From positions 891,492-955,491 of the forward strand of contig CM074822.1 of the NCBI GenBank assembly GCA_037447605.1: DNA of 64,000 bases. Reading direction: 5' to 3'. The position numbers and the translations under genes were made by a program. Below are positions 3,461-61,012 of the stretch, in pieces (the first letter of the stretch is position 1; every line of letters starts with the position of its first letter). Under the pieces are notes generated by a model, which was not told where the DNA came from, ran no database searches, and saw only the letters and a program-made list of their open reading frames with translations. This stretch comes from Zygnema circumcarinatum SAG 698-1b (Eukaryota; Plantae; Zygnematophyceae).

Positions 3461-3597
3461 TCACAACCCTCACTTCACAACCCTAAACCCTAAACCCTAA
3501 ACCCAAAACCCAAAACCCTAAACCAGAACCCTAAACCCTAAATCCACAACCCTAAACACTAAATTCACCACCCTAAACCCTGAATTCACAACCCTAA
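3461..3597. repeat. Interstitial telomere-like tract (CCCTAAA plus TTCACAACCCTAAA variants) overlapping the ethylene receptor stop codon
   Basis: Repeated AAACCCT units interleaved with TTCACAA. Confidence 0.8.
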
Positions 3598-22815: not shown

Positions 22816-22846
<31 letters not shown>

Positions 22847-23844: not shown

Positions 23845-23875
<31 letters not shown>

Positions 23876-24196: not shown

Positions 24197-24227
<31 letters not shown>

Positions 24228-24258
24228 AAAATGGAACGGTAACTGGAACTGTGAATCT

Positions 24259-25225
24259 TCACACGTAAATGTCCGCCATGGAGCTCGAAATCTCCTTCTT
24301 CAAGAGGATGGCCGCCGCCTCTTTCTCCACTTTCTCCCCACCTTCATTTAGCTGCGAGGCCTCTGATTGGCCGATCACATTTTTCAAAATTGACATTAAG
24401 ACCTGCAGCGCCTCGATGTTGGGCCCCACCGCATGCTCCACTACCGACAAAAGGATGGCGGGAAAATGGCGAAGTTGGTTCTGCAAATACCGAAGATGAA
24501 GAATTAACTTCGGATTAAAAAAGGTGAGAGCAAGAGGGAGAGGGGGGGGAGAGAGGGGAGAGAGGGAGAGGGGGAGGGGGGGGGAGAGAAGAGAGAGAAA
24601 GAGAGGGAGTGAAAGAGAGGGAGAGAAAGTGGGGGAAGAGAGAGAGAAAGAGAGGGAGAGAGAGGGGAGAGAGGGAGTGAAAGAGAGGGAGAGAGAGTGG
24701 GGGAAGAGAGAGAGAAAGAGCGGGAGAGAGTGGGGAGAAAGGGAGTGAAAGAGAAGGAGAGAGAGTGGGGGAAGAGAGAGAGAAAGAGAGGGAGAGAGTG
24801 AGAAGAGAGGGAGTGAAAGAGAGGGGGAGAGAGTGGGGAGAGAAAGAGGAGGGAGAGAGAGCGAGTGAGAGAGAGAGGGATAGAGGGAGAGAGACAGGGA
24901 GAGAGAGAAAGGGAGAGAAGGAGAGAGAGATAGAGATCGAGAGACAGAGAGAGAGGGGAGGAGAGAGAAAGAGAGGGGGGCGAAAGAAAGAGAGAGGGGG
25001 AGGGAGAGGCCATTTGATATCGTTACATAAGAAAGCTTTCTTAATCTTTTGATATTCTTTTCGTTTCAAAAACAGCCATACATAAGACAAAATTGCGGCC
25101 GCAAGACCATCCACGAGAGCGCCACGTGGCATGAACTCCGCCTCAAACTTTTTCGATTCGTCTCTGATTGCCGACTGCTCCCCAAAACAGTTCAAAAAGA
25201 ACAAGGTGCTCCGCATTATAACATC

Positions 25226-25256
<31 letters not shown>

Positions 25257-36230: not shown

Positions 36231-37500
36231 GGCTAAAGCCATGCTGACTTGGCGCTTTGGGATTTGTGGTTGGTAGATCCACAAATAATTTAAAATTGGG
36301 TAGTGATATTTCCACCCCTTTTTTGGATCCAAACACCCCTTCCCGGCCGGGCAGATTTCAAAAAGGATTAAAAACGGAAAATGCTTTTTTCACACCTTTT
36401 TGGAATCGATACCCACATTCCGTCGGCTGATTTTATTTTTGCTAACCAAGGAAAATGATACCCCGTCACTGCATTTTGAATACTGTATCCCGCCTCCCTG
36501 AATTTTTTTTAGAGGGAAAGAAATATCTGCCTGCCCGAATCCACTCGGAGCGGAAGATCCGTCCGCCACGAGATCGTTCGCGAGTGTCCGTCCTGCACAC
36601 GTGTGTCAATCGCAGCTGTCGATTCACTCGCAGATCGCACCATGGCAGATCACCGTTCGATCTGCAGCCGGGTTCGATCTCAGCGAATGGAAAGCGCCCA
36701 CGAGTCCCGTCAAAGCCGGATCGCACTTGCGAGTGCGCGCGTCCCTCGGCCCGAGATCTCGTCATTGTCAGCTTCCAACCAAACAACATCTGCCACGTGT
36801 TACATATCGACGTGGAAAATTTTGATTGGTTCAAGCTCTCAATGTATGGAATTTTGGATTCCTCAAAGTTGCGACCGTACGATATTTGTACGGAAAAACT
36901 TTTGAGACGAGTTTGGCGGGATACGTGGGCACGTGCCATTCGCTGTGACCGAGCCCGGCTGCAGATCAAATAGTGATCTGCCAAGTTGCGATCTGCGAGG
37001 GAATGGACGGCTGCGATTGACCGCACGAGTGAAAAAAAATTCAGGTAGGCGGGATATTCAAAATGGGGTGACGGGTTATCATTTTCCTTGTTTCGCAAAA
37101 ATATGATCTGCCGATGGAGGGTGGGTATCGATTCCAAAAAGGTGTGAAAAAAGCATTTTCCGTTTTTAATCCTTTTTGAAATCTGCCCGGCCGGGAAGGG
37201 GTGTTTGGATCCAAAAAAGGGGTGGAAATATCACTACCCTTCAAATTTAAGAGTTTGAATTTGAGTGCTGAATCCATGCTGATTTGGCGCTTTGAGATTG
37301 GTGGTTGGAAGATCAACAAAAAATTTAAGATTTAAAAGTTTGAATTTGTGGGCTGAATCCATGCTGACGTGGCGCTTCGAGATTGGTGGTTGGTAGATCA
37401 ACAAATAATTTAAAAGTTAAAATTTGAATTTGAGGGCTAAATCCATGCTGACTTGTCGCTGTGGGATTGGTGGTTGGAAGATCAACAATTAATTTACAAT
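36231..37500. repeat. ~85-bp tandem repeat (4 units) upstream of RAP74, with the first unit split by a foldback element
   Basis: GCT.AATCCATGCTGA.TTGGCGCT..G.GATT.GTGGTTGG.AGATC.ACAA units start at ~36231, 37267, 37352 and 37436. Confidence 0.85.
36298..37239. mobile_element. Foldback/MITE-like element, subfamily A (942 bp), solo copy
   Basis: GGGTAGTGATATTTCCACCCC... and ...GGGGTGGAAATATCACTACCC with a ~115-bp near-perfect TIR plus longer imperfect arms. Flanks TTAAAATT / TTCAAATT (7/8 TSD match). Same family as 47344-49243 and 48136-49081. Confidence 0.92.
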
Positions 37501-39026: not shown

Positions 39027-39112
39027 AACCCTAATCTCTTAGACCCAACCCTGACCCTAACCCTTACCCTAATCCTAACCCTAACGCTAACCCTAACGCA
39101 AACCCTAACCCT
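39027..39112. repeat. Degenerate (CCCTAA)n hexameric telomere-like tract just upstream of mTERF
   Basis: ~13 AACCCT-type hexamers, 80-165 bp upstream of the ATG. Confidence 0.8.
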
Positions 39113-39474
39113 AACTTTAAGCATGAGCTTGACCTGACTCTGAAATCATTCGCCATATCTCTAATCTGAGCCCTCTCCTGCCCGATGTTATTCATTAAAC
39201 TTCTTGTTAGCAATGCAAAAATGAAATCAGAAAGTCATTACAGTACTGTAACCGAGGGAATCCAATACACTCCTCTGCGGTATATTGTCGGCATTATTAC
39301 ATGCATTATCACATTTGGCATTCCCATGGTGATATTAATGCACAATTCTCCCCCATTATCAACAATTGAACTCTCATTATTACTATCACAAGCGGAAGAA
39401 AGTGGCGCACTGAGGGATGCGATGCTACAGAAGTGCAAAAGCTCCGGCTTACTGTACTTCCCTCATTTCATAAA

Positions 39475-39917
39475 GGGTACTGCTAAATTCACACCTTTTT
39501 TGTCTAGATACACCCCTTTTTTTCGCCGGGCAGATTTTAAAATGGACAAAAAAAGTTTAAAAACGTAAAATGCCTTTTTCACACCTTTCTGGAATCGATA
39601 CACACCTTTTTCCGTCGGGCAGATTTTATTTTATAAAAAGGCAAATGAATGAAATAATACCCCGCAGCCCCACCCCCTCCTCATTTTGGGTATCCCGCCC
39701 TCCTGAATTTTCTTTGAGAGAAAAAAATATCAGCCTGCCCGAATCTGCTCGGAGCGGAAGATTCGTCCACCACTAGATCGTTCGCGGGTGTGGGCCCTTC
39801 ACACTTGCGGTGAATCGCAGCCGTCGACTCTGTCGCAAATCGCACCACGACAACCGTTCGATCTGCAGCCGGCCTCGGTCCCAGCGAATGGCGCGCGCCC
39901 ACGTCCGCGCGCGCGAC
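39475..39917. mobile_element. Solo left arm of a third foldback subfamily (C)
   Basis: Starts GGGTACTGCTAAATTCACACCTTTTTT and then follows the same arm sequence as subfamilies A and B (CGCCGGGCAGATTTT, GGAATCGATAC, GCCTGCCCGAATC, GATCGTTCGCGGGTG, CCGTTCGATCTGCAGCCGG). No right arm was found. Confidence 0.75.
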
Positions 39918-40023: not shown

Positions 40024-43000
40024 CGTACAGATTGTTCGTACAGTAGGTACCCTTTGTCTTTGGCGTTGGCTTTGGCGTTGGCTTTGGCGTTGGCTTTGGC
40101 TTTGGCGTGTACTGTACCTCAGATTGTACGGGCTGCTTGACACTTTGTCGGCGCGTCGCGTTTGCCTGTCGGACGTGCGCCGCGCGACTACCGCTGATTA
40201 CCCTGACCACTGACAAGCGTCAGTAGATTGGTCAGGTGGCGCCTCGCCATTGGCTAATTCTGCTCCCTCGCGCACGCTCTCGAGTGTATACGATGAAGCA
40301 AAGTCTGCCCCAATACATCTCACACCTAGAAGCACACCCCTATGAACTAAGTGCCAACACAAACATGCTAATCTAAACTAACTATATACACTAACAACTT
40401 TGGCAAGAGGAGGTGGAGCTTCGTGAGGATTCTCCGCGTGTGGAGAGCTGCCTCACGCTCTTGTGTTGGAAGCTTGGCATAAGCTTATGGGGGCTTGAGA
40501 TGGAAAGTTTGTTATTATAAAGGAGTTTTAGGTTGGGAGCTTCCTCCTTCGTTTTTCTATTCCGCCTCTTGTGTGTTGTGTATGCACTTGAGTGAAAAAT
40601 GAGTGTGAGTGCTGTGGGCACTGAGAGAGAAGTTTCCATGGACAGTGAAGAGGGGGAAAGGGTTTGGCGGCAATGAATTTGCCTCTAATCCTTCTGCCTT
40701 AGGGTTTTCAGGATTTTTAGGGTTTAAAGGGTTTTTAGGGTTTTTCTCACAATAATCTCTACACTAGAGGGAGCGCAATTTAAAAATGTACTTGTTCTAG
40801 ACACGACCGTAAGAAATAATTTTTCCCGTGAGAGTGAATTTCTAGTTCGACATGAATTTGTCCGTTTGGCTATCTAGGATCTCCTTCTCGCACCCTCGTC
40901 CTACGTGGCCCATAGTACGGCTTATATCACCTTTTACCCGTCGCTCCGGCTCCTATCCGCCGTCGCCGCGCGCGTGCAGGACCGCTCCGCGAGTGGCTCC
41001 GCCTTCAGCGGACAATCCACATTGTACAAAAACTGTACAGACAACCGCGGCTGCCTCGCACTCACGCGAGGTGACCGCGCTCCGATTGGCGGCGCCCAAG
41101 GGTCCCCCGCTTCGCGACAAACGGCTGCGGTACGGGTACAGGTACAGTACTGGTACGGGTACAGAGAATGATTCCCTTTGTCGCACGCGTCACGGCGCTC
41201 TCCCATTCAACCACTGACAGCGCCAGCTCGCACGCGCCAATCCCGGTGGTACCCGCCTCCGCCTCTCCGTCTCCCTCACCCCCTCCCTCTTCCTCTCCCT
41301 CCCCTTCTCCCTCTCCTCACTATCCTCTCCCTCTCCTCGCTCCCTTTTCCTCTCCTGTGCGCGTCGCCATGGCGTCCGCCGCCGCCCTCCTCCTGGCGGC
41401 CATGCTCTGCTTTGCCGCCTCTGTGGACGCCGCGCTCGTGAAGGCCGCTCAGCAGAGTGAGTGGCGCGCTCGCATGCATGCATGCCTGCATGACATTCAT
41501 GCCTGCATGCCTGCCTGTGGGAAGGAGGCTGACGGGGAGTGGGCGGGCGGGCGATTGCAGCGGCGTTGCAGGCTGTGAAGGCGAGTCTGCAGCTGACGGA
41601 TGCGAAGTTGCCGAACTCATGGAAGGCCTCCGCCGACTGCAGCGCGTGGCGCGGCATCAAGTGCGACGCTAAGGGGAACGTCATTTCGCTGTGCGCGCCT
41701 ACCCTCCCTCCTCCGGGCAGAAGAAAATAGATTTTTTTACCCTGCGCTCCTTATTGGGCGGGCTGGGGGAATTTGTCATCCTCTGGTTCTTTTTGTTTGT
41801 TTAAACCGTTTTCAAACTTCTTTTTGCTTCGTCAGAAGATCTTCCCGTGCCGGGCAAGGCGCCAATGTATTTCATATCTGCCCCTGCACATTGCTTCTCA
41901 TTTCGCCATCGTATCTGAGTGCACATTCCATGCGCGGCTAACGCAGAAAATGAGGCAACATTTTCTGCACAATTCTGAAAGTCGCGAAAACTCCTCCTGG
42001 CGACCATCACACTGACATTCGAAACTGTCGTTGTTACAGAGCGAAATGACATGTTCGACTTTTCGTTTGTTTCTAATATTCTCGTTGATGTTTTCTCACT
42101 TTTTTGCGCAGAACCATCACTCCAGTCTCTTTTTATATATTTGGCTTTGAGTTTACTCAAACAGTTCCCGATGTGTATCCAGTCACCAACAAGGGAACCA
42201 TCTCTCCAAAGATATCGGAGCTCAAAAATTTGGAGACACTGTGAGTTCTATTGAAGCCATCTCTAGGATAAGTGAGCGTGCTTCTCCTTCTGTTTGTCTT
42301 GATGGTTTTGGTTTCCTTAAAGTCATTCATGCTTGTGAATACGAATTCACCCTAAATTTTCAGCTTTCTCGTAACTTTCTGCCGACTTTGGAGCTGAAAG
42401 GCTTGGGGCTGCTTGCCGCTTGAAGTGACTAAAATTTGAGGTTTTTCGGAGGTTGAGAGATTGAAGTTGGTTTGAGTTTTGGACGCTCAGGGTTTTCGAA
42501 TTGTTTAATTGGTGGTGGCGTAGTTCTGAGTTGAAATCTTCCTCTCTTTATGCTTTCTGAGTAAATTTCAAGGCGGATGATGGGAGCTGCAGGATTCTTC
42601 TTACGTCTGGCCTGGTCGGAGACATACCGGAGGGTCTCGGAAATCTGAAAAAACTCAAATTTCTGTGAGAACAAAGCCCCACTACACTTCGTGCAGGAGT
42701 CGAATTCTGAGCATCGCCGTCATAACCGTGCAAATCTTTACTTTAATCTTTGGAGACTGCAGAGAGTTTTCCGGGTTCAGAAAATTCCTGAATCTAACGA
42801 GAAGAACTACAGGAGAAACTGTTTCTTACCACTTTGCTTTCTCTTGTGTGTTTGGGGATGCAGTGAATTGAGCGGGAACAATTTTCCTTCCAATCTGCCA
42901 AGCAGTGTAAAAATGTTGACGAGTCTGGAGTACCTGTATGCTGCCTACTCTTTTGTCCCCTTCGGCAGCTTACCCATTAGTAGGCAGTTAGTTGCATTTC

Positions 43001-46000
43001 AGGGGAAGACGACAAACTCATCAAGCTTCACCTTCTCCTTTCTTGAAGACATATTCCATGACGTGAAGTGTTCTGTCATGTGAAATTTAAAAGGCGTTAA
43101 GGGTTTAAGAGCGGTGGTGTATCACTAGTTAGGGTCAGAATGGCATTAGGGTTGCTGTTCCGATCGATGCTTTGAGTTGGGGTGTAAGGAGGGCCACTGA
43201 AAGTTCTCCTTATTCTCCTTTTCTCATATTCTTTTTATATTTGTCTTTGAGCGGATTGTCAGAGCTTGCAGCGACTGCAAGATGAAAGGGAAGGTCCCCG
43301 TGGGAATCGGCAGTCTCTTGAAATTGCAGTGGTTGTAAGTTCCCTTTTCCTTATCGGCGGCTACTTTTGACCATTTTAACATGAAGGAAAAGAATCTGGC
43401 GATCCTTCTTTTCTCTTTCTTTCAGAAAAACACTTTCTCTTTCAGCTGTAAGAACGCTTCCAGAAGTCGTGAATCTTTTGCATACTAGAATACTCTAATA
43501 AACGAAGCGATATTGTGAATATTCTTGATCAATCACGAGCTTCTCCATGCCGCTTATTTCAGGTGATCTCATGTGATTGATGCATTTCTTATTGCATTTT
43601 GCAGGGATTTCACCATCAATGCGTTAAGCGGTAAAATTCCGCCGGGCATTGTCAACCTGCCAAACCTCTTAACCCTGTAAGTGCTTCCAACGGTTGGCAG
43701 ATCAACTTTCATCTCTGCATTGAAACCCCCGAAGTCGCTTCTTATTGAAGCTTGTTCTGAAACGTTGGTGTGTTGCAGGGCACTCCAAAACAACACACTA
43801 AGTGGGGAAATTCCTGTTCGCTCCTCGAAGCTGAAACCATTGGAGCTTTTGTAAGCAGCCATAGTCAAAGACCTTCATCTTCTTTCCTTCGCTTCTTTTC
43901 CGGGCAATGTTGCCCATATCTATCTTAGCGATGTCGTACCCATGTCAGTGGGATGGTTCAAACGTTCTAAAACTTGCCTCTTCCTTGCTTAATGGGCGAG
44001 TTGTGGTCCTATTCCTCAGTGTCATGGGTATCAACAAGTTTTCGGGCGAAATTCCAAAGTGGGTCTTCACCACTCCGTTTGTGTAAGTTTGCTGACATGC
44101 AGAACCCACCACTCTGAATTGATCTACTGAGTTTCAGTGATATGGAGGTTTAAGGAGATTCCCTGCCTATGAAGATTCCCCTTTTTAACAGTTTTAGGGA
44201 AAACTGAAAACTGTGCTTTCATGCATGTAGGTAGCTGCACAGTGAAGGATAATTGAACTCGTTACCTTTCTATTTTGCACCTTCTATCTTACCCTTTGAC
44301 CTTCACACTTTCGCACTCTGCTTCTTTTTCTTTTTTCCTCTTCTCTCGCCTTCTATCTGTCTCTCTCCTTCTCTCTCTCTCTCTCGGTCCTTTTCCTTTG
44401 ATCTTAATTTCTCGATGTTTTCTGTAATCCACTTTGATCTCAGGCTCTTGTATAATAACCAGTTGGTTGGAAAAATTCCGAAAATTCCAAGCTCCGCCAA
44501 CGTTATGTAAGTGTAATATGATCAGGAAAGAATAAATGGTTGTATTTCTTTTATTGAAACTTAATTTTTACCTGGGAGTGAAGTGTTTTCACTGACATGC
44601 CAGCTCTTGCTGCACACTGAAATAGGTCTGTTTTAGGTTTTTTTTTTTTGTTTGTGGGTTGATTTGTGTTGTCCTAAGCTTCGTTTCATGTTCAAATCAA
44701 TTCGTTCTGTTTGTTTGCGTAAGCTTTAACTGATGCGCGGCTTGTACAGCTGCCGCCATTGGTCTTGCTCGGCTGCAAGGTTACGGCCACTTCAGGACGT
44801 CTTGGGTCTCAATGGGTTTCAGGGTTTTAGGGTTTTTAGGGTTTTTAGGGTTTTGAGTCATTTAATGTTTCTGATTCTCATAATAGATTGCCGTGGGTGG
44901 TTCCTTGTGACATTTTAAGAGTTGAATGGCGCTCCTCGTATGACATTGCCGTGAATTTGAGCGTTTCATGAAGAGTTCCTTTTTCTAACCATTGACCTCC
45001 TTCCCACTGACTCCTTGGAGGCTGCAGTGAGCTGAGCTCAAACTATCTATCTGGAGAGGTAGTCATTTCAGACGGTGGTGCAGAGTCCTCATATTACTTT
45101 TCGGGGAATTATTTCTCGAATATCACTGGAGGAAGTACCAGTTCTTTTATTGCTGGCGATGACAACTGCTTATCCGGAGCCCAGGCCGTGTACTTCGGAC
45201 CACAGAAGTCAAATAAAGTATGCAATAATTTCTGCAATGCAAAGCAGGCAGGCGGAGCCTGCGGGAAGAACGGAGTCTGCGGCCCCGCCGGCGCTAAGGC
45301 CCCGACATGCACCTGCAAGAAGGGGTACTTCACCTTCGTCAAGAAATTCACATGCACTAAAGGTATTTCCCCGCTTCCATTGTCACTGCCGTTTTTCCCT
45401 TTTTTTGTTCTGTTTCTATGATTGAGGGTGTGTTCGCACTCAAGGTTTCACACCTTGAAGTTTGCTTCGAGCAACGCGCTGTACTGTTTAGGTTTTGAGG
45501 GGTTTTGCAAGAGACTCGAGAACCCCTGTCCGGTTGAGTCCTGTTTGTACTAATTCTAGTCCCTGGATGTTCCTGTTTTCTGCCCCTTAGACGCGCCGCC
45601 GAGCCCTAGCGCCCCCGCGGTCGGAGGGAGGACTTGAGCGAGGGACTTCGAGGCGATGGGGCTTGACTTGACTTGACTTGACTTGACTTGACTTGACTTG
45701 TGCTTTGACTTTGAGTCTGGACGGGGAACTTGAAGTTCTTAAGGGATTGTTGGTCGCAAGGTCGGAAGACATGAGATACAAGAAGATCCAAGACAATGAA
45801 CAACTACAAACAATGGTGGAATGAAGTCAGGGGCAATCCTTAGTTATTTTTGCTTTGAATTGGATGGTGATAATGATCTGATGTTTTTGTCGTTGCCACG
45901 GCCATTAAGGAATGCATGGAACACATCACACGAACTAAAAAAGACAGTAGCTCTCAAAGTCGACACAGTCTGTAAAATTGTGAGAGGAGAGTACTGATTC

Positions 46001-46529
46001 TGTAGCTCGACAGATCGCAAGAAGGCCTCCGAAAGGCCACGTGGCATCCTGCAGGACGCCTTCGGTCCGACCGCCGCAGCCGTCCTCCAATGGAAACGCG
46101 CCACGTAAGCCGGAAGTATCTGGAAAAGTACCTCCAATGGGAAAGCGTCACATAAGCCCTAATTTCTCGTATAGTATCCCTTAACGGTAACGCGCCACGT
46201 AAGTCCTACTTATGCAAAACCAGCGTGATTGTGTTTATGAAGCGAACGGGACAACACGCCCGTCCTTGCTATATCGGGTTCTATGTGTGATTTTTTTGTA
46301 GTTGTTACAGTGCATAGAATTGTGGGCTGTTGAGGCAGAAATCTCTGAATCTCGTTTAACGGAGCTGAACTTCGGAGCGTTACTGTGTACGAATTCCACG
46401 TGGCATGCCATGAAGCTCTCGGGCGCCGGCGGTCGCTCAACGAAAGTCAAACCCTGACTTGCACGTGACGCGGTCGATCTCAGCCGTCGTGTGCACGTGT
46501 GGCGATGATCGACGGTCAGGATCGCCTCG
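40024..46529 (+). repeat. Segmental duplication, copy 1 (paralogous to 55186-61012)
   Basis: Collinear from CGTACAGATTGTTCG to GGTCAGGATCGCCTCG. Copy 1 carries an extra ~600 bp at ~40215-40820. Confidence 0.95.
41369..45637 (+). CDS. Secreted LRR protein with C-terminal EGF-like domain, copy 1 (380 aa, 11 exons)
   Basis: Exons 41369-41456, 41561-41690, 42112-42240, 42864-42935, 43263-43334, 43605-43676, 43779-43850, 44020-44082, 44444-44506, 45028-45362, 45591-45637 (1143 nt, frame intact). Signal peptide MASAAALLLAAMLCFAASVDA; LRRNT SWKASADCSAWRGIKCDAKGNV; 72-nt phase-2 plant-type LRR exons (LxxNxLSGxIP); C-x8-C-x5-C-x9-C-x-C-x12-C with CKKGY; no TM segment. Confidence 0.88.
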
Positions 46530-46930: not shown

Positions 46931-47175
46931 AGTACTCCTCTCAAGGATGATCGCTATTTCATCGGAGTACTCGTTCTGTTTTAAAACATACTGACGTTGT
47001 GTTAAGTCTGACAAGCCCTATTCTTCAGAGGAATACTTCCGTAACTTTCCATTTTCGTCAAATTTTGTTAAGTCTGACCAGCCATAATAGGGGGTATGAA
47101 ACGTAAAAAACGTCAGTATGTTTGACACTAGAACGAGTACTCGGTGACATCGCGACCCTGCTGTAGAGGAGTACT
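46931..47175. mobile_element. Small degenerate foldback (245 bp, ~68-bp imperfect inverted arms)
   Basis: AGTACTCCTCT...GAGTACTCGTTCT...AAACATACTGACGTT is inverted at 47109-47175. Flanked by direct repeats of CTTTCGTAACTTTCCTTTTCCGTC. Confidence 0.55.
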
Positions 47176-47343
47176 TTCGTAACTTTCCTTTTCCGTCAAA
47201 TTTTGTTCGCGCCTCCGCGACGCGCGCGTGCGACAGCGGCGACGTCGGCTAAAAAAAGAAGGAAAATTCTATTCTCACACCTTTTTTGTCTACACACAGG
47301 CCTCTTTTCGCCGGGCAGATTTTAAAATAGCACAAAAAAAGAA

Positions 47344-49243
47344 GGGTAGTGATATTTCCACCCCTTTTTTGGATCCAAACACCCCTTCCCGGCCGGGCAG
47401 ATTTCAAAAGGGATTAAAAACAGAAAATGCTTTTTCACACCTTTTTGGAATCGATACCCACCTTCTTCCGTCCGCTGATTTTATTTTTGCTAACCAAGGA
47501 AAATGATACCCCGTCATCGCATTTTGAATACTGTCTCCCGCCTCCCTGAATTTTTTTTTTGAGGGAAAGAAATATCTGCCTGCCCGAATCCGCTCGGAGC
47601 GGAAGATCCGTCCGCCACGAGATCGTTCGCGGGTGTCCGTCCTTTACACGTGTGTGTCCATCGCAGCTGTCGATTCCCTCGCAGATCACACCACTGCAGA
47701 TCACCGTTCGATCTGCAGCCGGGCTCGATCTTAGCGAATGGAAAGCGCCCACGAGTCCCGTCAAAGCCAAATCGCACGTGCGAGTGCGCGCGTCCTTCGG
47801 CCCGAGATCTCGTCATTGTTAGCTCTCAGCCAATCAACATCTGCCACGTGCTACATTTTTGACGTGGAAATTTGTGATTGGTCTAAGATCTCAATGTACA
47901 AAATTTTGGGTTCCTCAGGTTGCGACCGTATGACATTTGTACGGACAAACGTTTGAGAGGACTTTGGCGGGATACGTGGACACGTGCCATGCGCTGTGAC
48001 CGAGCCCGGCTGCCGATCAAATATTGATCTGTCGTGTTGGGATCTGCGAGGGAATCGACGGCTGCGATTGACCGCACGCGTGAAAAAAAATTCAGGTAGG
48101 CGGGATATTCAAAGTAGGGTGACGGGTTATTATTTGGGTAGTGATATTTCCACCCCTTTTTTGGATCCAAACACCCCTTCCCGGCCGGGCAGATTTTAAA
48201 AGGGATTAAAAACAGAAAATGCTTTTTTCAGACCTTTTTGGAATCGATACCCACCTTCTTCCGTCGGATGATTTTATTTTTGCTAACCAAGGAAAATGAT
48301 ACCCCGTCACCGCATTTTGAATAGTGTATCCCGCCTCCCTGAATTATTTTTTTGAGGGAAAGAAATATCTGCCTGCCCGAATCCGCTCGGAGCGGAAGGA
48401 TGTCCGCCACGAGATCGTTCGCGGGTGTCCGTCCTTTACACGTGTGTGACAATCGCAGCTGTCGATTTCCCTCGCAGATCACACCACTGCAGATCACCGT
48501 TCGATCTGCAGCCGGGCTCGATCTTAGCGAATGGAAAGCGCCCACGAGTCCCGTCAAAGCCATATCGCACCTGCGAGTGCGCGCGTCCTTCGGCCCGAGA
48601 TCTTGCATATTGTTAGCTCCCAGCCAATCAACATCTGCCACGTGTTACAATTTTGACGTGGAAAATTTTGATTGGTCGAAGATCTCAATGTACGAAATTT
48701 TGGGTTCCTCAAGTTGCGACCGTACGACATTTGTACGGAGAAACTTTTGAGAGGACTTTGGCGGGATACGTGGGCTCGTGCCATGCGCTGTGACCGAGCC
48801 CGGCTGCCGATCAAATAGTGATCTGCCGTTTGCGATCTGCGAGGGAATCGACGGCTGCGATTGACCGCACGCGTGAAAAAAAACTCAGGTAGGCGGGATA
48901 TTCAAATGGGTCGACGGGTTATCATTTTCCTTGTTTCGCAGAAATAAAATCTGCTGATGGAGGGTGGTATCGATTCCAAAATGGTGTGAAAAAAGCATTT
49001 TCCGTTTTTAATCCTTTTTGAAATCTGCCCGGCCGGGAAGGGGTGTTTGGATCCAAAAAAGGGGTGGAAATATCACTACCCTATTATTTTCCTTGTTTCG
49101 CAGAAATAAAATCTGCCGATGGAGGGTGGTATCGATTCCAAAAAGGTGTGAAAAAAGCATTTTCCGTTTTTAATCCTTTTTGAAATCTGCCCGGCCGGGA
49201 AGGGGTGTTTGGATCCAAAAAAGGGGTGGAAATATCACTACCC
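47344..49243. mobile_element. Foldback element subfamily A (middle), inserted in the left TIR of element B; 946 bp after removing its insert
   Basis: GGGTAGTG...CACTACCC termini; exact 8-bp TSD AAAAAGAA at 47336-47343 and 49244-49251. Confidence 0.93.
48136..49081. mobile_element. Foldback element subfamily A (innermost, 946 bp), inserted in the right arm of the middle copy
   Basis: GGGTAGTG...CACTACCC termini; exact 8-bp TSD TATTATTT at 48128-48135 and 49082-49089. Confidence 0.93.
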
Positions 49244-50189
49244 AAAAAGAACACACCTTTCACACCTTCTCACCTTTTTTTTTTCACCTTTTTTTTCCCA
49301 CCTTTTTGAAATCGATACACACCTTTCTCCATCGGGCAGATTTTACCCCTTCTTGTTTTTTTCAAAGAAAAAAATATCGGCCTGCCCGAATCCACTCGGA
49401 GCAGAAGATCCGTCCGCCACGAGATCGTTCGCGGGTGGCCGTCCTTCACACGTGCAGAAACTATACACCGTCGATTCTAGAGCAGATCGCACCACGGCAG
49501 ATCACCGTTCGATCGGCAGCCGGGATCGGTTCCAGCGAATGGCACACGCCCACGTGTCCCACCCGAGCAGGCTCGACCGTACACAACTCGTACGGTCACA
49601 GCTTCGAGGAAAGTCTAAATTCCTTACATTGCGAGCTTGAACCAATCACCATCTGCCGCGTGCTCTTTTTAGACGTGGCAAACTGTGATTGGTACAGGCA
49701 CTCAACTTTAATTATTACGTTTTTTGACTTTCCTCGAAGCTGCGGGCGTACGCCTTTTGTACGGTCCTTGGAGCCGGCTTGGGTGGGACACGTGGGACAG
49801 AGCCCGGCTTCTGATCGAACGGTGATCTGCCATGGTGCGATCTGCGTGAATATCGACGGCGGAAAATTATTGCACGTGTGAAGGACGGCCACCCGCGAAC
49901 GATCTCGTGGCGGACGGATCTTCTGCTCCGAGCGGATTCGGGCAGGCAGATATTTTTTTCTCTGAAAATAAATGATAAGGAGTAAATCTGCCCGACAGAA
50001 AAAGGTCTCACGGCGCTCGGCCGCTCAGGACTAGTAGCGTGTATCGATTCCAAAAAGATGTGAAAAAAAAAGTGAAAAAAAAAAGGTGTGAAAGGTGTGT
50101 TCCTTTTTTGTCTATTTTAAAATCTGCCCAGCGAAAAGAGGTCTGTGCGTAGACAAAAAAGGTGTGAGAATAGAATTTTCCAAAAAGAA

Positions 50190-50522
50190 TTTAATGAAAA
50201 TGTGGTATAGTTGCCACGAGTCTGACGTTGCCACGTCGCGCGTCCAAATTTGTTGTGCTTTTCGTTGGATCGAATGCGCAGAAAATGGGGTATATCGCGT
50301 AACCATTCAGTAATTGCCAAATGTCGTTTTCTACGTACGACAGCGTTCGATTTGAATGTTTTATGTGACCTACGGCTTCGATTAAGTTGTCAAAGATGAA
50401 TTTAATGAAAAAGGGGTATAGTTGCCGCGAGTCTGACGTTGCCACGTCGCGCGACCTGATTGGTTGTACGTTTCGTTGGATAGAATGCGCAGAATATGGG
50501 GTATATCGCGTACCCATTCAGC
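50190..50522. repeat. Two ~115-bp direct repeats (50190-50305, 50400-50522) leading into the satellite
   Basis: TTTAATGAAAA...GGTATAGTTGCC.CGAGTCTGACGTTGCCACGTCGCGCG...TTCGTTGGAT.GAATGCGCAGAA.ATGGGGTATATCGCGTA.CCATTCAG occurs twice. Confidence 0.85.
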
Positions 50523-50536: not shown

Positions 50537-53500
50537 GGTTCCAAACCAGTCGACTGGTTGTCAACCAGTGGCATCCACTGGTTCCAAACCAGTCGACTGG
50601 TTGCCAACCAGTGGCATCCACTGGTTCCAAACCAGTCGACTGGTTGTCAACCAGTGGCATCCACTGGTTCCAAACCAGTCGACTGGTTGTCAACCAGTGG
50701 CATCCACTGGTTCCAAACCAGTCGACTGGTTGCCAACCAGTGGCATCCACTGGTTCCAAACCAGTCGACTGGTTGTCAACCAGTGGCATCCACTGGTTCC
50801 AAACCAGTCGACTGGTTGTCAACCAGTGGCATCCACTGGTTCCAAACCAGTCGACTGGTTGTCAACCAGTGGCATCCACTGGTTCCAAACCAGTCGACTG
50901 GTTGTCAACCAGTGGCATCCACTGGTTCCAAACCAGTCGACTGGTTGCCAACCAGTGGCATCCACTGGTTCCAAACCAGTCGACTGGTTGCCAACCAGTG
51001 GCATCCACTGGTTCCAAACCAGTCGACTGGTTGTCAACCAGTGGCATCCACTGGTTCCAAACCAGTCGACTGGTTGTCAACCAGTGGCATCCACTGGTTC
51101 CAAACCAGTCGACTGGTTGCCAACCAGTGGCATCCACTGGTTCCAAACCAGTCGACTGGTTGCCAACCAGTGGCATCCACTGGTTCCAAACCAGTCGACT
51201 GGTTGTCAACCAGTGGCATCCACTGGTTCCAAACCAGTCGACTGGTTGCCAACCAGTGGCATCCACTGGTTCCAAACCAGTCGACTGGTTGTCAACCAGT
51301 GGCATCCACTGGTTCCAAACCAGTCGACTGGTTGTCAACCAGTGGCATCCACTGGTTCCAAACCAGTCGACTGGTTGTCAACCAGTGGCATCCACTGGTT
51401 CCAAACCAGTCGACTGGTTGTCAACCAGTGGCATCCACTGGTTCCAAACCAGTCGACTGGTTGTCAACCAGTGGCATCCACTGGTTCCAAACCAGTCGAC
51501 TGGTTGTCAACCAGTGGCATCCACTGGTTCCAAACCAGTCGACTGGTTGCCAACCAGTGGCATCCACTGGTTCCAAACCAGTCGACTGGTTGTCAACCAG
51601 TGGCATCCACTGGTTCCAAACCAGTCGACTGGTTGCCAACCAGTGGCATCCACTGGTTCCAAACCAGTCGACTGGTTGCCAACCAGTGGCATCCACTGGT
51701 TCCAAACCAGTCGACTGGTTGCCAACCAGTGGCATCCACTGGTTCCAAACCAGTCGACTGGTTGCCAACCAGTGGCATCCACTGGTTCCAAACCAGTCGA
51801 CTGGTTGCCAACCAGTGCCGCCGATCGAAACAACCATTCGACTGGTTGCCAACCAGTGGCATCCACTGGTTCCAAACCAGTCGACTGGTTGTCAACCAGT
51901 GGCATCCACTGGTTCCAAACCAGTCGACTGGTTGTCAACCAGTGGCATCCACTGGTTCCAAACCAGTCGACTGGTTGCCAACCAGTGGCATCCACTGGTT
52001 CCAAACCAGTCGACTGGTTGTCAACCAGTGGCATCCACTGGTTCCAAACCAGTCGACTGGTTGTCAACCAGTGGCATCCACTGGTTCCAAACCAGTCGAC
52101 TGGTTGTCAACCAGTGGCATCCACTGGTTCCAAACCAGTCGACTGGTTGCCAACCAGTGGCATCCACTGGTTCCAAACCAGTCGACTGGTTGTCAACCAG
52201 TGGCATCCACTGGTTCCAAACCAGTCGACTGGTTGCCAACCAGTGCCGCCGATCGAAACAACCATTCGACTGGTTGCCAACCAGTGGCATCCACTGGTTC
52301 CAAACCAGTCGACTGGTTGTCAACCAGTGGCATCCACTGGTTCCAAACCAGTCGACTGGTTGTCAACCAGTGGCATCCACTGGTTCCAAACCAGTCGACT
52401 GGTTGTCAACCAGTGGCATCCACTGGTTCCAAACCAGTCGACTGGTTGCCAACCAGTGGCATCCACTGGTTCCAAACCAGTCGACTGGTTGTCAACCAGT
52501 GGCATCCACTGGTTCCAAACCAGTCGACTGGTTGTCAACCAGTGGCATCCACTGGTTCCAAACCAGTCGACTGGTTGTCAACCAGTGGCATCCACTGGTT
52601 CCAAACCAGTCGACTGGTTGCCAACCAGTGGCATCCACTGGTTCCAAACCAGTCGACTGGTTGCCAACCAGTGGCATCCACTGGTTCCAAACCAGTCGAC
52701 TGGTTGCCAACCAGTGGCATCCACTGGTTCCAAACCAGTCGACTGGTTGTCAACCAGTGGCATCCACTGGTTCCAAACCAGTCGACTGGTTGCCAACCAG
52801 TGGCATCCACTGGTTCCAAACCAGTCGACTGGTTGCCAACCAGTGGCATCCACTGGTTCCAAACCAGTCGACTGGTTGTCAACCAGTGGCATCCACTGGT
52901 TCCAAACCAGTCGACTGGTTGCCAACCAGTGGCATCCACTGGTTCCAAACCAGTCGACTGGTTGCCAACCAGTGGCATCCACTGGTTCCAAACCAGTCGA
53001 CTGGTTGTCAACCAGTGGCATCCACTGGTTCCAAACCAGTCGACTGGTTGTCAACCAGTGGCATCCACTGGTTCCAAACCAGTCGACTGGTTGTCAACCA
53101 GTGGCATCCACTGGTTCCAAACCAGTCGACTGGTTGCCAACCAGTGGCATCCACTGGTTCCAAACCAGTCGACTGGTTGTCAACCAGTGGCATCCACTGG
53201 TTCCAAACCAGTCGACTGGTTGTCAACCAGTGGCATCCACTGGTTCCAAACCAGTCGACTGGTTGTCAACCAGTGGCATCCACTGGTTCCAAACCAGTCG
53301 ACTGGTTGTCAACCAGTGGCATCCACTGGTTCCAAACCAGTCGACTGGTTGTCAACCAGTGGCATCCACTGGTTCCAAACCAGTCGACTGGTTGTCAACC
53401 AGTGGCATCCACTGGTTCCAAACCAGTCGACTGGTTGTCAACCAGTGGCATCCACTGGTTCCAAACCAGTCGACTGGTTGTCAACCAGTGGCATCCACTG

Positions 53501-54512
53501 GTTCCAAACCAGTCGACTGGTTGCCAACCAGTGGCATCCACTGGTTCCAAACCAGTCGACTGGTTGCCAACCAGTGGCATCCACTGGTTCCAAACCAGTC
53601 GACTGGTTGCCAACCAGTGGCATCCACTGGTTCCAAACCAGTCGACTGGTTGTCAACCAGTGGCATCCACTGGTTCCAAACCAGTCGACTGGTTGTCAAC
53701 CAGTGGCATCCACTGGTTCCAAACCAGTCGACTGGTTGCCAACCAGTGCCGCCGATCGAAACAACCATTCGACCGTTGCCAACCAGTGGCATCCACTGGT
53801 TCCAAACCAGTCGACTGGTTGCCAACCAGTGGCATCCACTGGTTCCAAACCAGTCGACTGGTTGCCAACCAGTGGCATCCACTGGTTCCAAACCAGTCGA
53901 CTGGTTGTCAACCAGTGGCATCCACTGGTTCCAAACCAGTCGACTGGTTGTCAACCAGTGGCATCCACTGGTTCCAAACCAGTCGACTGGTTGTCAACCA
54001 GTGGCATCCACTGGTTCCAAACCAGTCGACTGGTTGTCAACCAGTGGCATCCACTGGTTCCAAACCAGTCGACTGGTTGCCAACCAGTGGCATCCACTGG
54101 TTCCAAACCAGTCGACTGGTTGTCAACCAGTGGCATCCACTGGTTCCAAACCAGTCGACTGGTTGCCAACCAGTGGCATCCACTGGTTCCAAACCAGTCG
54201 ACTGGTTGTCAACCAGTGGCATCCACTGGTTCCAAACCAGTCGACTGGTTGTCAACCAGTGGCATCCACTGGTTCCAAACCAGTCGACTGGTTGCCAACC
54301 GCTGGTTAGCGACCGAACAACCATTCGACTGGTTGCCAACCAGTGCCGCCGATCGAAACAACCATTCGACTGGTTGCCAACCAGTGGCATCCACTGGTTC
54401 CAAACCAGTCGACTGGTTGCCAACCAGTGGCATCCACTGGTTCCAAACCAGTCGACTGGTTGCCAACCAGTGCCGCCGATCGAAACAACCATTCGACTGG
54501 TTTGGAACCAGT
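50537..54512. repeat. Tandem satellite, 43-bp unit GGTTCCAAACCAGTCGACTGGTTG(T/C)CAACCAGTGGCATCCACT, ~90 copies with occasional variant units
   Basis: Direct observation; one T/C dimorphic site. The variant unit containing GCCGCCGATCGAAACAACCATTCG occurs at ~51817, 52245, 53748, 54344 and 54472. Confidence 0.98.
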
Positions 54513-54518
54513 GATCCA

Positions 54519-54689
54519 ATGGTTGGCAACCATTAAATTGTCGGTGTACGGATCCTCGTGATTGTCGTATATATCAGAAATATTTTCCTCGCGACGCATT
54601 TTCCAGAAGTAATTTTAAAAAATTGCCGAAAATCGCATTTAAAAAATATTTAGATCCGTGACACCGACAATTTAATGGTTGCCAACCAT
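54519..54689. repeat. 171-bp module with ~37-bp inverted ends separating the two satellite blocks
   Basis: ATGGTTGGCAACCATTAAATTGTCGGTGTACGGATC ... GATCCGTGACACCGACAATTTAATGGTTGCCAACCAT (one indel); AT-rich core. Confidence 0.8.
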
Positions 54690-54705
54690 TTGATTTAATG
54701 GATAT

Positions 54706-55070
54706 AACCATTCGACTGGTTGCCAACCAGTGCCGCCGATCGAAACAACCATTCGACTGGTTGCCAACCAGTGGCATCCACTGGTTCCAAACCAGTCGAC
54801 TGGTTGCCAACCAGTGCCGCCGGATCGAAACAACCATTCGACTGGTTGCCAACCAGTGGCATCCACTGGTTCCAAACCAGTCGACTGGTTGTCAACCAGT
54901 GGCATCCACTGGTTCCAAACCAGTCGACTGGTTGCCAACCAGTGGCATCCACTGGTTCCAAACCAGTCGACTGGTTGTCAACCAGTGGCATCCACTGGTT
55001 CCAAACCAGTCGACTGGTTGCCAACCAGTGGCATCCACTGGTTCCAAACCAGTCGACTGGTTGCCGACCA
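54706..55070. repeat. Second short block of the 43-bp satellite (~8 units including variants)
   Basis: Same unit and orientation as 50537-54512. Confidence 0.93.
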
Positions 55071-55185
55071 GTAGACGTCCAACCATTGCCATCCAATGGT
55101 TGTCCAATGGTTGCCGATCCACTGGTCCGAACTGTGAAATATTGGGTAGCGAAAATGAGAGGGGCGAAAATATTGGGGGGGTCTA

Positions 55186-58100
55186 CGTACAGATTGTTCG
55201 TACAGTAGGTACGCTCTGTCTTTGGCGTTGGCTTTGGCATTGGCTTTGGCTTTGGCGTTGGCTTTGGCGTTGGCTTTGGCTTTGGCGTGTACTGTACCTC
55301 GGATTGTACGGGCTGCTTGACACTTTGTCGGCGCGTCGCGTTTACCTGTCGGACGTGCGCCGCGCGACGACCGCTGATTACCTGGACGCTGACAGAAATT
55401 CCCGTGAGAGTGAATTTCTAGTTCGACATGAATTTGTCCGTTTGGCCATCTAGGATCTCCTTCTCGCACCCTCGTCCTACGTGGCCCATTGTACGGTCGA
55501 GATCACCTTTCCCGTCGCTCCGGCTCCTATCCGCCGTCGCCGCGCGCGTGCAGGACCGCTCCGCGAGTGGCTCCGCCTTCAGCGGTCCCTTCGACATTGT
55601 ACGAAAAATGTACGGATAACCGCGGCTGCCTCGCACACACGCGTGGTGACCGCGTTCCGATTGGCGGCGCCCAAGGGTCCCCCGCTTCGCGACAAACGGC
55701 TGCGGTACGGGTACAGGTACTGTACGGGTACGGGTACAGAGAATGATTCCCTTTGTCGCACGCGTCACGGCGCTCTCCCATTCAACCACTGACAGCGCCA
55801 GCTCGCACGAGCCAGTCCCGGTGGTACCCGCCGCCGCCTCTCCGCCTGACCGCCTTCCCCTCTTCCTCTCCCTCCCCTCTCCCTCTCCTCCCTCTCCTCT
55901 CCCTCTCCTCGCTCCCTTTTCCTCTCCTGCGCGCGTCGCCATGGCATCCGCCGCCGCCCTCCTCCTGGCGGCCATGCTCTGCTTTGCCGCCTCCGTGGAC
56001 GCCGCCCTCGTGAAGGCCGCGCAGCAGAGTGAGTGGCGCTCTCACATGCATGACATGCATGCATGACATTCATGCATGCATGCATGCATGCCTGTCGGAA
56101 GGAGGCTGACGGGGAGCGGGCGGGCGGGCGAGTGCAGCGGCGTTGCAGGCCGTGAAGGCGAGTCTGCAGCTGACGGACAAGAAGCTGCCAAACTCGTGGA
56201 AGGCCTCCGCCGACTGCAGCGCGTGGCGCGGCATCAAGTGCGACGCTAAGGGGAACGTTATATCGCTGTGCGCGCATCCCCTCCCTGCTCCGGGCAGAAG
56301 AAAATAGTTTTTTTCTACCCTGCGGTCCTTTCTGGGCGGGCTGGGGAAACTTGGCAACCTCTGGTTCTTTTTGTTTGTTTAACCGTTTTTAAACTTCTTT
56401 TTGCTTCGTCAGAAGATGATTCTGTGCCGGGCAAGGCGCCAATGTATTTCATATCTGCCCCTGCACATTGGTTCTCATTTTTCGCCATCGTATCTGAGTG
56501 CACATTCCATGCGCGGCTAACGCAGAAAATGAGGCAACATTTTCTGCACAATACTTAAAGTCGCGGAAACTCCTCGAAACTGTCGTTGTTACAGAGCGAA
56601 ATGAAATGTTCGACTTTTCGTTTGTTGCTAATATTCTCGTTGATGTTTTCTCACTTTTTTGCGCAGAACCATCTCTCCAGTTTCTTTTTATATATTTAGC
56701 ACTGTGTTTAATCAAACAGTTCCCGATGTGTATCCAGTCACCAACAAGGGAACCATCTCTCCAAAGATATCGGAGCTCAAAAATTTGGAGACACTGTGAG
56801 TTCTATTGAAGCCATCTCCTTCTGTTTGTCTTGATGGTTTTGGTTTCCTTAAAGTCATTCATGCTTGTAAATGTGAATTCACCCTAATTTTTTTTTTCAG
56901 CTTTCTCGTAACTACCATTTGAGGTTTTCCGGAGGTTGAGAGATTGAAGTTGGTTTGAGTTTTGGGCGCTCAGGGTTTTCGAATTGTTTAATTGTGGTGG
57001 CGTAGTTCTGAGTTGAAATCTTCCTCTCTTTATGCTTTCTGAGTAAATTTCATGGCGGATGATGGAAACTGCAGGATTCTTCTTGCGACGGGCATAGGCG
57101 GAGACATACCGGAGGGACTCGGAAATCTGAAAAAACTCAAAATTCTGTGAGAACAAATTCCCACTTCACTTCGTGCAGGAGTTGAATTCTGAGCATCGCC
57201 GTTCATAACCGTGCAAATCTTTACTTTAATCTTTAATCTTTGGAGACTGCAGAGAGTTTTCCGGGTTCAGAAAATTTCCTGAATCTAACGAGAAGAACTA
57301 CAGGAGAAACTGTTTCTTACCACTTTGATTTCTCTTGTGTGTTTGGGGATGCAGTGAATTGAGCGGGAACAATTTTACTTCCAATCTGCCAACCAGTATA
57401 AAAATGTTGACGAGTCTGGAATACCTGTATGCTGCCTATACTTTTTTCCCCTTCGGCAGATTACCCATTAATAGGCAGTTAGTTGCATTTCAGGAGAAGT
57501 CGATAGACTCATCAAGCTTCACCTTCTCCTTTCTTGACGACATATTCTATGACGTGAAGTGTTCTGTCATGTGAAATTTAAAAGGCGTTAAGGGTTTGAG
57601 AGCGGTGGTGTATCACTAGTTAGGGTCAGAATGGCATTAGGATTGCTGTTCCGATCGATGCTTTGAGTTGGGGTGTAAAGAGGGCAACTGAAAGTTCTCC
57701 TTCTTCTCCTTTTCTCATATTTTTTTTTTTTCTTTATTGCCAGAGCTTGCAGCGAATGCAAGATGAAAGGGAAGGTCCCCGTGGGAATCGGCAGTCTCTT
57801 GAAATTGCAGTGGTTGTAAGTTCCCTTTTCCTTATCGGCGGCTACTTTTGACTATTTTAACATGAAGGAAAAGAATATGGCGTTCCTTCTTTTCTCTTTC
57901 TTTCAGAAAAACACTTTCTCTTTCAGCTGTAAGAACGCTTCCAGAAGTCGTGAATCTTTTGCATACTAGAATACTCTAATAAACGAAGCGATATTGTGAA
58001 TATTCTTGATAAATCACGAGCTTCTCCATGCCGCTTATTTCAGGTGATCTCATGTGATTGATGCATTTCTTATTGCATTTTGCAGGGATTTCACCATCAA

Positions 58101-61012
58101 TGCGTTAAGCGGTAAAATTCCGCCGGGCATTGTCAACCTGCCAAACCTCTTAACCCTGTAAGTGCTTCCAACGGTTGGCAGATCAACTTTCATCTCTGCA
58201 TTGAAACCCCCGAAGTCGCTTCTTATTGAAGCTTGTTCTGAAACGTTTGTGTGTTGCAGGGCGCTTCAAAACAACACACTAAGTGGGGAAATTCCTGTTC
58301 GCTCTTCGAAGCTGAAACCATTGGAGATTTTGTAAGCAGCCATAGTCAAAGACCTTCATCTTCTTTCCTTCGCTTCTTTTCAGGCAATGTTGCCCATATC
58401 TATCTTAGCGATGTCGTACCCATGTCAGTGGGATGGTTCAAACGTTCTAAAACTTGCCTCTTCCTTGCTTAATGGGCGAGTTGTGGTCCTATTCCTCAGT
58501 GTCATGGGTATCAACAAGTTTTCGGGCGAAATTCCAAAGTGGGTCTTCACCACTCCGTTTGTGTAAGTTTGCTGACATGCAGAACCCACCACTCTGAATT
58601 GATCTACTGAGTTTCAGTGATATGGAGGTTTAAGGAGATTCCCTGCCTATGAAGATTCCCCTTTTTAACAGTTTTAGGGAAAACTGAAAACTGTGCTTTC
58701 ATGCATGTAGGTAGCTGCACAGTGAAGGATAATTGAACTCGTTACCTTTCTATTTTGCACCTTCTATCTTACCCTTTGACCTTCACACTTTCGCACTCTG
58801 CTTCTTTTTCTTTTTTCCTCTTCTCTCGCCTTCTATCTGTCTCTCTCCTTCTCTCTCTCTCTCTCTCGGTCCTTTTCCTTTGATCTTAATTTCTCGATGT
58901 TTTCTGTAATCCACTTTGATCTCAGGCTCTTGTATAATAACCAGTTGGTTGGAAAAATTCCGAAAATTCCAAGCTCCGCCAACGTTATGTAAGTGTAATA
59001 TGATCAGGAAAGAATAAATGGTTGTATTTCTTTTATTGAAACTTAATTTTTACCTGGGAGTGAAGTGTTTTCACTGACATGCCAGCTCTTGCTGCACACT
59101 GAAATAGGTCTGTTTTAGGTTTTTTTTTTTTGTTTGTGGGTTGATTTGTGTTGTCCTAAGCTTCGTTTCATGTTCAAATCAATTCGTTCTGTTTGTTTGC
59201 GTAAGCTTTAACTGATGCGCGGCTTGTACAGCTGCCGCCATTGGTCTTGCTCGGCTGCAAGGTTACGGCCACTTCAGGACGTCTTGGGTCTCAATGGGTT
59301 TCAGGGTTTTAGGGTTTTTAGGGTTTTTAGGGTTTTGAGTCATTTAATGTTTCTGATTCTCATAATAGATTGCCGTGGGTGGTTCCTTGTGACATTTTAA
59401 GAGTTGAATGGCGCTCCTCGTATGACATTGCCGTGAATTTGAGCGTTTCATGAAGAGTTCCTTTTTCTAACCATTGACCTCCTTCCCACTGACTCCTTGG
59501 AGGCTGCAGTGAGCTGAGCTCAAACTATCTATCTGGAGAGGTAGTCATTTCAGACGGTGCAGAGTCCTCATATTACTTTTCGGGGAATTATTTCTCGAAT
59601 ATCACTGGAGGAAGTACCAGTTCTTTTATTGCTGGCGATGACAACTGCTTATCCGGAGCCCAGGCGGACGCCCAGACGTACTTCGGACCACAGAAGTCAA
59701 ATAAAGTATGCAATAATTTCTGCAATGCAAAGCAGGCAGGCGGAGCCTGCGGGAAGAACGGAGTCTGCGGCCCCGCCGGCGCTAAGGCCCCGACATGCAC
59801 CTGCAAGAAGGGGTACTTCACCTTCGTCAAGAAATTCACATGCACTAAAGGTATTTCCCCGCTTCCATTGTCACTGCCGTTTTTCCCTTTTTTTGTTCTG
59901 TTTCTATGATTGAGGGTGTGTTCGCACTCAAGGTTTCACACCTTGAAGTTTGCTTCGAGCAACGCGCTGTACTGTTTAGGTTTTGAGGGGTTTTGCAAGA
60001 GACTCGAGAACCCCTGTCCGGTTGAGTCCTGTTTGTACTAATTCTAGTCCCTGGATGTTCCTGTTTTCTGCCCCTTAGACGCGCCGCCGAGCCCTAGCGC
60101 CCCCGCGGTCGGAGGGAGGACTTGAGCGAGGGACTTCGAGGCGATGGGGCTTGACTTGACTTGACTTGACTTGACTTGACTTGACTTGTGCTTTGACTTT
60201 GAGTCTGGACGGGAACTTGAAGTTCTTAAGATATTGTTGGTCGCAAGGTCGGAAGACATGAGATACAAGAAGCTCCAAGACAATGAACAACAACAAACAA
60301 TGCTGGAATGAAGTTAGGGGCGATTCTTGTAGTTATTTTTGCTTTGGAATTGGATGGTCATAATGATCTGATGTTTTTGTCGTTGCCATGGCCATTAAGG
60401 ACTGCATGGAACTCATCACACGAACTAAAAACGACAGTAGCTTTCAAAGTCGACAAAGTCTGTAAAATTGTTAGAGGAGAGTACTGATTCTGTAGCTCGA
60501 CAGCGCAGAAAGGCCTCCGAAAAGCCACGTGGTATCCTGAAGACCGCCGTCGGTCCCGACCGACCGCAGCCGACCTCCAATGGGAACGGGCCACGTAAGC
60601 CGGAAGTTTTGGAAGAGCAACTCCAATGGGAAAGCGCCACATAAGCCCTAATCTCTAGATTAGTATCCCTTAATGGTAAGGCGCCACGTAAGCCCTACTT
60701 ATGCAAAACCAGCGTGATTGTTTAAAAGCAGCGAACGGAACAGGACGCCCGTCCTTGCTGCATCGGATTCTATATGCAATTTTTCCATAGTTGTTAAATA
60801 GAATTGTCGGCTGTTGAGGCAGAAATCTCTGGATCCCGTTTAACGGGTCTGGACTTTGGAGCGTTACTGTGTACGGATGCCACGTGGCATGCCATGAAGC
60901 CCTCGGGCGCCGGCGGTCGTTCAATGAAAGTCAAACCGTGAATTGCACGTGACTTGGTCGATCCAGCCGTCGATTACACGTGTTAAGATGATCGACGGTC
61001 AGGATCGCCTCG
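55186..61012 (+). repeat. Segmental duplication, copy 2 (paralogous to 40024-46529)
   Basis: Collinear homology including the promoter, all LRR exons and introns, the (CTTGA)n 3' repeat and the downstream GCCACGT-rich region. Confidence 0.95.
55941..60125 (+). CDS. Secreted LRR protein with C-terminal EGF-like domain, copy 2 (~381 aa, 11 exons)
   Basis: Same exon structure as copy 1. ATG 55941, last exon 60079-60125 (DAPPSPSAPAVGGRT*). The coding indels seen relative to copy 1 are in frame (-3 and +6 nt in exon 10). Confidence 0.86.

Follow-up and report, generated by a model that had tools for sequence, protein, structure and literature searches.

How did three foldback DNA transposons come to lie one inside another in the genome of the streptophyte alga Zygnema circumcarinatum SAG 698-1b, and which enzyme moved them? 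The locus lies within a 64,000-nucleotide stretch of contig CM074822.1 (assembly GCA_037447605.1, positions 891,492 to 955,491 of the forward strand), hereafter the window, numbered from its first letter. Cut at its element coordinates, the sequence resolves into an element B (47261-50181) that holds a first copy of an element A (A1, 47344-49243), which in turn holds a second (A2, 48136-49081), all on the plus strand and each flanked by an 8-bp target-site duplication (TSD). B opens with GGAAAATTCT and lies between two identical copies of AAAAAGAA (47253-47260 and 50182-50189), whilst A1 and A2 both open with GGGTAGTGAT and are bounded by AAAAAGAA (47336-47343 and 49244-49251) and TATTATTT (48128-48135 and 49082-49089), respectively. 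Excision of each insert together with one TSD copy returned units of 946 bp (A1), 946 bp (A2) and 1013 bp (B), the same lengths that the initial annotation had restored (946, 946 and ~1013 bp), and a re-reading of positions 47100-50400 confirmed every number it had given for a triple nest with exact 8-bp duplications. Three cut-and-paste events, one after another, are preserved at this locus, each the insertion of a non-autonomous foldback transposon with terminal inverted repeats (TIRs) from one of two related families, A and B. The nest is genuine and far exceeds what chance would produce, and its architecture itself sets the order of insertion, with B followed by A1 and A1 by A2.

From left to right along the plus strand, the nest begins with the terminal 83 bp of the B left arm (47261-47343), comprising its module 1, the last 8 bp of which (47336-47343) are the A1 target; 78 nt of this terminus are 92% complementary to 50104-50181 at the opposite end of B. 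The left 792 bp of A1 follow (47344-48135), ending in the A2 target TATTATTT (48128-48135), and then the complete 946-bp foldback element A2 (48136-49081), the innermost and youngest insertion, supported by its TSD, its fold and a pattern scan of the window. Beyond A2 lie the right end of A1 (49082-49243), made up of the second TATTATTT copy (49082-49089) and the final 154 bp of the element, and the remainder of B (49244-50181), made up of the second A1 TSD copy AAAAAGAA (49244-49251) and 930 bp of B. The composite of B, A1 and A2 spans 2921 bp and that of A1 and A2 spans 1900 bp.

Each insertion was examined by rebuilding the site as it stood before the insert arrived. The rebuilt A1 empty site aligned gaplessly across the junction with the native sequence of A2 and of a further copy, A3, and the rebuilt left arm of B could be aligned, ungapped at the junction, to its reverse-complemented right arm. 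A3 (36298-37239, plus strand, 942 bp) is a fourth complete copy, bounded by an extra pair of the 21-bp A terminus, which occurs six times in the window against none expected. It sits within an 85-bp tandem repeat between TTAAAATT and TTCAAATT, which match at 7/8 positions. Its rebuilt site aligned gaplessly with one neighbouring repeat unit and with a single 1-bp gap, several bases from the junction, to the other, and A3 therefore serves as a natural empty-site control. For B, no empty-site paralogue was found in the window, where a flanking 211-bp repeat spans the right side only. A blind search of the entire 64 kb, in which exact 8-bp direct repeats had to abut a TIR of at least 17/20 on its outer side, recovered B, A1 and A2 as its sole genuine matches; the others were artefacts generated by the palindromic 8-mers TGGATCCA and CCGGCCGG within the TIRs.

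The same window holds one truncated relative, C (39475-39904, plus strand), which starts with GGGTACTG and retains a left arm only. Searches of the window for more distant members with arm profiles (nhmmer) returned only A1-A3, B and C, and the motif CCGGGCAGATTT is confined to the A, B and C elements. Together these amount to 4.5 copies within 14 kb, which is also the count for the whole 64-kb window. A3 and C lie on either side of an open reading frame (ORF) for an mTERF protein (38948-37773, minus strand; Pfam E = 1e-27) with relatives in streptophytes, C 527 bp upstream of it and A3 534 bp downstream.

The elements have the anatomy of the foldback class, in that hairpin-forming inverted arms dominate each element and repeat internally. 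Folded as single-stranded DNA, A2 reached a minimum free energy of -338.5 kcal/mol (z = -29.3) and the 930-bp part of B reached -355.6 kcal/mol (z = -38.1), relative to shuffles at about -129 to -130 kcal/mol. Terminal arms of 78-131 nt are 92-98% complementary, and in full the inverted arms reach over ~450 bp. None of the 10 ORFs inside the elements had a Pfam match or was conserved between copies, so that the earlier description of quasi-palindromic units lacking coding sequence was borne out by both fold and ORF content. Within the nest, Rfam gave no matches to structured RNA at E values up to 1, and a scan for bacterial promoters and terminators stayed below shuffle expectation. In being non-coding and carrying both TIRs and TSDs, the elements may be compared with MITEs (miniature transposable elements with inverted repeats), although at 0.95-1.0 kb they exceed the usual size; their abundance is the 4.5 copies in 64 kb given above.

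When left arms were aligned with reverse-complemented right arms, A, B and C were found to have conserved blocks in common. Arm asymmetries, such as a ~90-bp stretch absent from the A right arm, are common to all A copies and are therefore properties of the family rather than decay of single copies. Every arm opens with two tandem ~80-bp modules that have the core CAC(A/C)CCTTTTTTG ... CGGGCAGATTTTA (in its fuller form CAC(A/C)CCTTTTT(T)G); a hidden Markov model of the terminal module matches the second module in every arm, and modules 1 and 2 within one element are 52-68% alike. Module 2 of A starts with GGAAAATGC, and 18/21 positions of its opening 21-mer agree with B's outer terminus. In layout, A corresponds to a tandem TIR. 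We considered the inner module of A as a fossil nested insertion and rejected this, since its flanking 8-mers (TTAAAAAC and GTTTTTAA) are inverted rather than direct and therefore form no TSD; the module more probably arose by duplication in tandem.

At the centre of each complete element lies a convergent CCAAT-N9-CCACG pair (A1, 47830-47881; A2, 48624-48675; B, 49642-49692; A3, 36779-36829). Allowing at most one mismatch, the motif has 33 matches in the window against 3.2 expected, an approximately 10-fold enrichment. Three convergent pairs arranged in the same way (14480-14533, 14997-15049 and 21873-21927) are not part of any long inverted repeat, and these may be host promoter modules.

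With no coding capacity of their own, the elements would have to be moved by a transposase supplied from elsewhere. Across the window, 88 ORF segments (minimum length 90 aa) were searched against Pfam and no transposase domain was found; the only domains that this search returned were host-type (Kelch/F-box, Mpv17/PMP22, parts of an ethylene receptor and a RING finger), and the mTERF domain was identified separately. Together with the lack of coding capacity in the elements, this upholds the proposal of a non-autonomous family. When a 22-mer common to A and B was sought in metagenomes there were no matches, nor were there any in a viral scan and a prokaryote-genome scan for the family. A degenerate TIR pattern picked out five metagenome loci (L001-L005, of which L005 is a human-gut-metagenome contig that we do not regard as human sequence), but by blastn these matched at most 17 bases (L003 and L004) or not at all (the other three) and are therefore chance matches.

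The ends of the elements give the properties by which their enzyme may be classified. Their termini read GGGTAG, GGAAAA and GGGTAC, and the TSD is 8 bp long in 4/4 complete insertions. Mutator-like elements (MULEs) have TSDs of 8-11 bp and TIRs of 14-500 bp, with Spectre making 8 bp (PMC6446971); A and B fall at the low end of this TSD range and have long TIRs with tandem modules, in a group whose TIRs run to tens or hundreds of bp and often carry subterminal or tandem repeats. Close likenesses include non-autonomous foldback MULEs, namely Tm1 of root-knot nematodes, the Muta1 derivatives of Aedes and Drosophila FB (PMC3169594, PMC5225508), which share with A and B composite long inverted arms built from repeated motifs, non-coding MITE-like members and TSDs in the 8-10-bp range. 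Muta1 itself makes TSDs of 8 or 9 bp, has subterminal repeats and is classified as foldback-type (PMC5225508), and the foldback MULE family Tm1 likewise has insertions nested inside its members (PMC3169594). The differences are that TSDs of A and B are strictly 8 bp, whereas those of Tm1 and FB are mostly 9 bp; that their arms have two ~80-bp modules instead of many 12-15-bp units; that A, B and C have AT-rich targets, whereas Tm1 and Muta1 have no target preference; and that A and B, unlike foldback MULEs, are known without a linked transposase. Plant MULEs with tandem TIRs also carry an outer and an inner terminal copy in tandem at each end (PMC3310237), and like A they have an inner copy that lacks a TSD and a size of about 1-1.4 kb; their TSDs, however, are 9-11 bp and their TIRs at least 100 bp each, compared with the ~80-bp modules here, which are 52-68% alike.

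On this analysis of structure, the mobilising enzyme would most likely be a Mutator-like (MULE/Foldback) DDE transposase, a reading to which we assign a probability of roughly 0.6. Several observations weigh against it. No transposase is linked to these ends, and the MULE assignment draws on structure and taxon priors. All four complete insertions have exactly 8-bp TSDs, whereas the TSDs of most MULEs run to 9-11 bp and those of Muta1 are partly 8 and partly 9 bp long. The combination of GG termini, 8-bp TSDs and long TIRs suits Merlin equally (PMC8101967). Finally, B and A1 share the TSD AAAAAGAA, which plain AT preference does not explain.

Among the alternatives, an origin in another superfamily with 8-bp TSDs (hAT, P, Novosib or Zisupton/KDZ) is unlikely. 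The strictly 8-bp TSD would fit, and hAT elements such as Ac/Ds also have subterminal repeats. The termini of hAT elements, however, follow (C/T)A(G/A)NG, their 8-bp TSDs follow the target pattern nTnnnnAn, and P elements begin with CATG; the GG termini seen here match neither superfamily, and AAAAAGAA, TATTATTT and TTAAAATT all miss the hAT target pattern on both strands. Arms of several hundred bp are, in addition, atypical for both hAT and P. On these sequence features hAT, which agrees in TSD length but in neither termini nor target pattern, is disfavoured.

Mobilisation by a Merlin/IS1595-type DDE transposase, with the same anatomy and the same history of nesting, is a poorer prospect still. 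The initial annotation had taken GG...CC ends with 8-bp TSDs as the hallmark of Merlin, and the features themselves are indeed those of this superfamily, which has conserved 5'-GG termini, TIRs of 24-462 bp and TSDs of 8-9 bp (PMC8101967). The elements agree with it in terminal 5'-GG, in TSDs that are strictly 8 bp in 4/4 insertions and in TIRs within the published range. As a hallmark the combination was overstated, since the same features also fit MULE and foldback elements and there is hardly any record of Merlin from Streptophyta: blastp did not find it there, and the known cases amount to a single Selaginella entry in Repbase and a few tblastn matches of doubtful standing (PMC8101967). 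Nor was the DDE_Tnp_IS1595 domain found in the window, and no foldback MITE-like derivative with tandem modules appeared in the Merlin literature compared here. A Mutator-like transposase stays our preferred candidate.

The choice of target bears on why the elements nest. Flanking 8-mers with at most one G/C were found at 5/5 sites (AAAAAGAA twice, TATTATTT, TTAAAATT, and TTCATAAA beside C), whilst 5.4% of window 8-mers are equally AT-rich (P for 5/5 of about 5e-7), in agreement with the AT-rich targets that had been claimed. Such 8-mers are 1.9-fold denser in family members than elsewhere, and family members contribute about 7% of the AT-rich 8-mer sites in the de-nested window. Of the A insertions, 2/3 lie inside family arms; this fraction, on which the earlier idea of repeated landing in the family's own arms is based, comes from one window that was picked for its oddness. 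AT preference eases self-nesting, but alone it does not predict that two of three A insertions fall in family members. The identity between the B and A1 TSDs (AAAAAGAA; left copies at 47253-47260 and 47336-47343) extends on the left side to 10 bp (AAAAAAAGAA), and the 8-mer and its complement account for about 0.8% of the AT-rich 8-mer sites in the window. The shared TSD would reflect either preference for a motif resembling A5GAA or a coincidence with a likelihood of the order of a per cent.

True self-targeting beyond AT preference, in which a transposase tethered to resident terminal modules steers insertions into the adjacent A/T linkers, would fit these observations because 2/3 A insertions lie in family arms and because B and A1 share AAAAAGAA, yet we regard it as distinctly improbable. 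If true, such homing would build composite, multi-module ends, and could explain tandem-TIR elements like A, with an outer A-specific module and an inner module resembling the B terminus. Self-nesting has precedent: grass MITEs are reportedly self-nested, their AT-rich sequence being said to match their own target preference (Jiang and Wessler, Plant Cell, 2001). A and B resemble these in being small non-autonomous elements that insert into one another, and differ from the grass Tourist and Stowaway elements, which use TAA or TA targets, in having an 8-bp AT-rich site and a length three to four times greater.

The weakest alternative, that the nest owes nothing to transposition but reflects a mis-joined or collapsed assembly, or else recombination or slipped replication between repeats, could appeal to a region rich in repeats, to a 162-bp tandem repeat at 48920-49243 and to a 4.5-kb satellite that begins 355 bp from the nest, but is very improbable, given that mis-joins arise within shared sequence and not exactly at element termini beside duplicated 8-mers, that all three junction pairs give back a full-length unit and gapless host sequence, that A1 and A2 differ at 41 sites and are therefore distinct copies rather than one collapsed copy, and that the 162-bp repeat is the exact prediction of an insertion 154 bp from the A1 end.

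The divergence between copies tempers the view that near-identical A elements mark recent activity, which proved too strong. A1 and A2 are 95.7% identical (41 substitutions), A1 and A3 93.3%, and A2 and A3 93.6%, so that A copies at 93-96% identity differ by 4-7%. Private substitutions number 18 in A1, 16 in A2 and 40 in A3, about 2% each in A1 and A2; exact 8-bp TSDs say little on recency, because they are still likely at this level of private change. The outermost ~60 bp are identical across all six A ends. The ratio of observed to expected CpG is 1.2 in the elements and 0.68 in the window, and 8 of the 74 private substitutions are CpG transitions, which hints that the copies are not decaying through CpG methylation.

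Other features of the window include a direct segmental duplication of ~5.7 kb (40823-46529 and 55399-61012, 90-95.6% identity), between the copies of which sit both the nest and a 43-bp satellite (50537-55072). A 1371-bp tandem duplication (22816-24186 and 24197-25567, 100% identity, 10-bp spacer) either arose very recently or was introduced by the assembly. Three kinds of interstitial telomere-like array (AACCCTA, ACCCTA and TTTTAGGGT) lie at 3479-3598, 4596-4773, 39043-39115, 40699-40745, 44817-44854 and 59299-59336. The window also contains a U5 spliceosomal RNA gene (30624-30735, minus strand, 92.7 bits) and a tRNA gene (1739-1812, plus strand).

Overall, B landed first, at a AAAAAGAA site, A1 next entered the A-rich linker 83 bp inside the B left arm, and A2 came last, into a T-rich linker 154 bp from the A1 right end. 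In each event a DDE transposase supplied in trans would bind the repeated ~80-bp terminal modules, two per arm, excise the element, and reinsert it into AT-rich DNA by way of a cut with an 8-bp stagger. The nesting would then follow from AT preference combined with arms rich in A/T runs, and short-range reinsertion near the donor may contribute, with 4.5 copies lying within 14 kb. The outer ends of both composites (B with A1 and A2, and A1 with A2) are intact, and each composite might in principle be mobilised as a whole.

Nested non-autonomous DNA transposons are commonplace, and plants have many nested MITE-like elements; the nest described here is real but ordinary for a repeat-rich genome of the green lineage, a new family of a known kind in which nothing requires a new mechanism. 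What it provides is a clean, datable series of insertions (B, A1, A2) in a streptophyte-alga genome, together with the traits to be expected of its transposase, which would cut with an 8-bp stagger, use AT-rich targets and bind a region of two modules. The exact termini are usable for a genome-wide search for the autonomous partner. Ultimately, the one aspect of some wider interest is a possible role in gene regulation, in that the elements are CpG-rich and carry a central motif pair that is also present at non-transposon sites.

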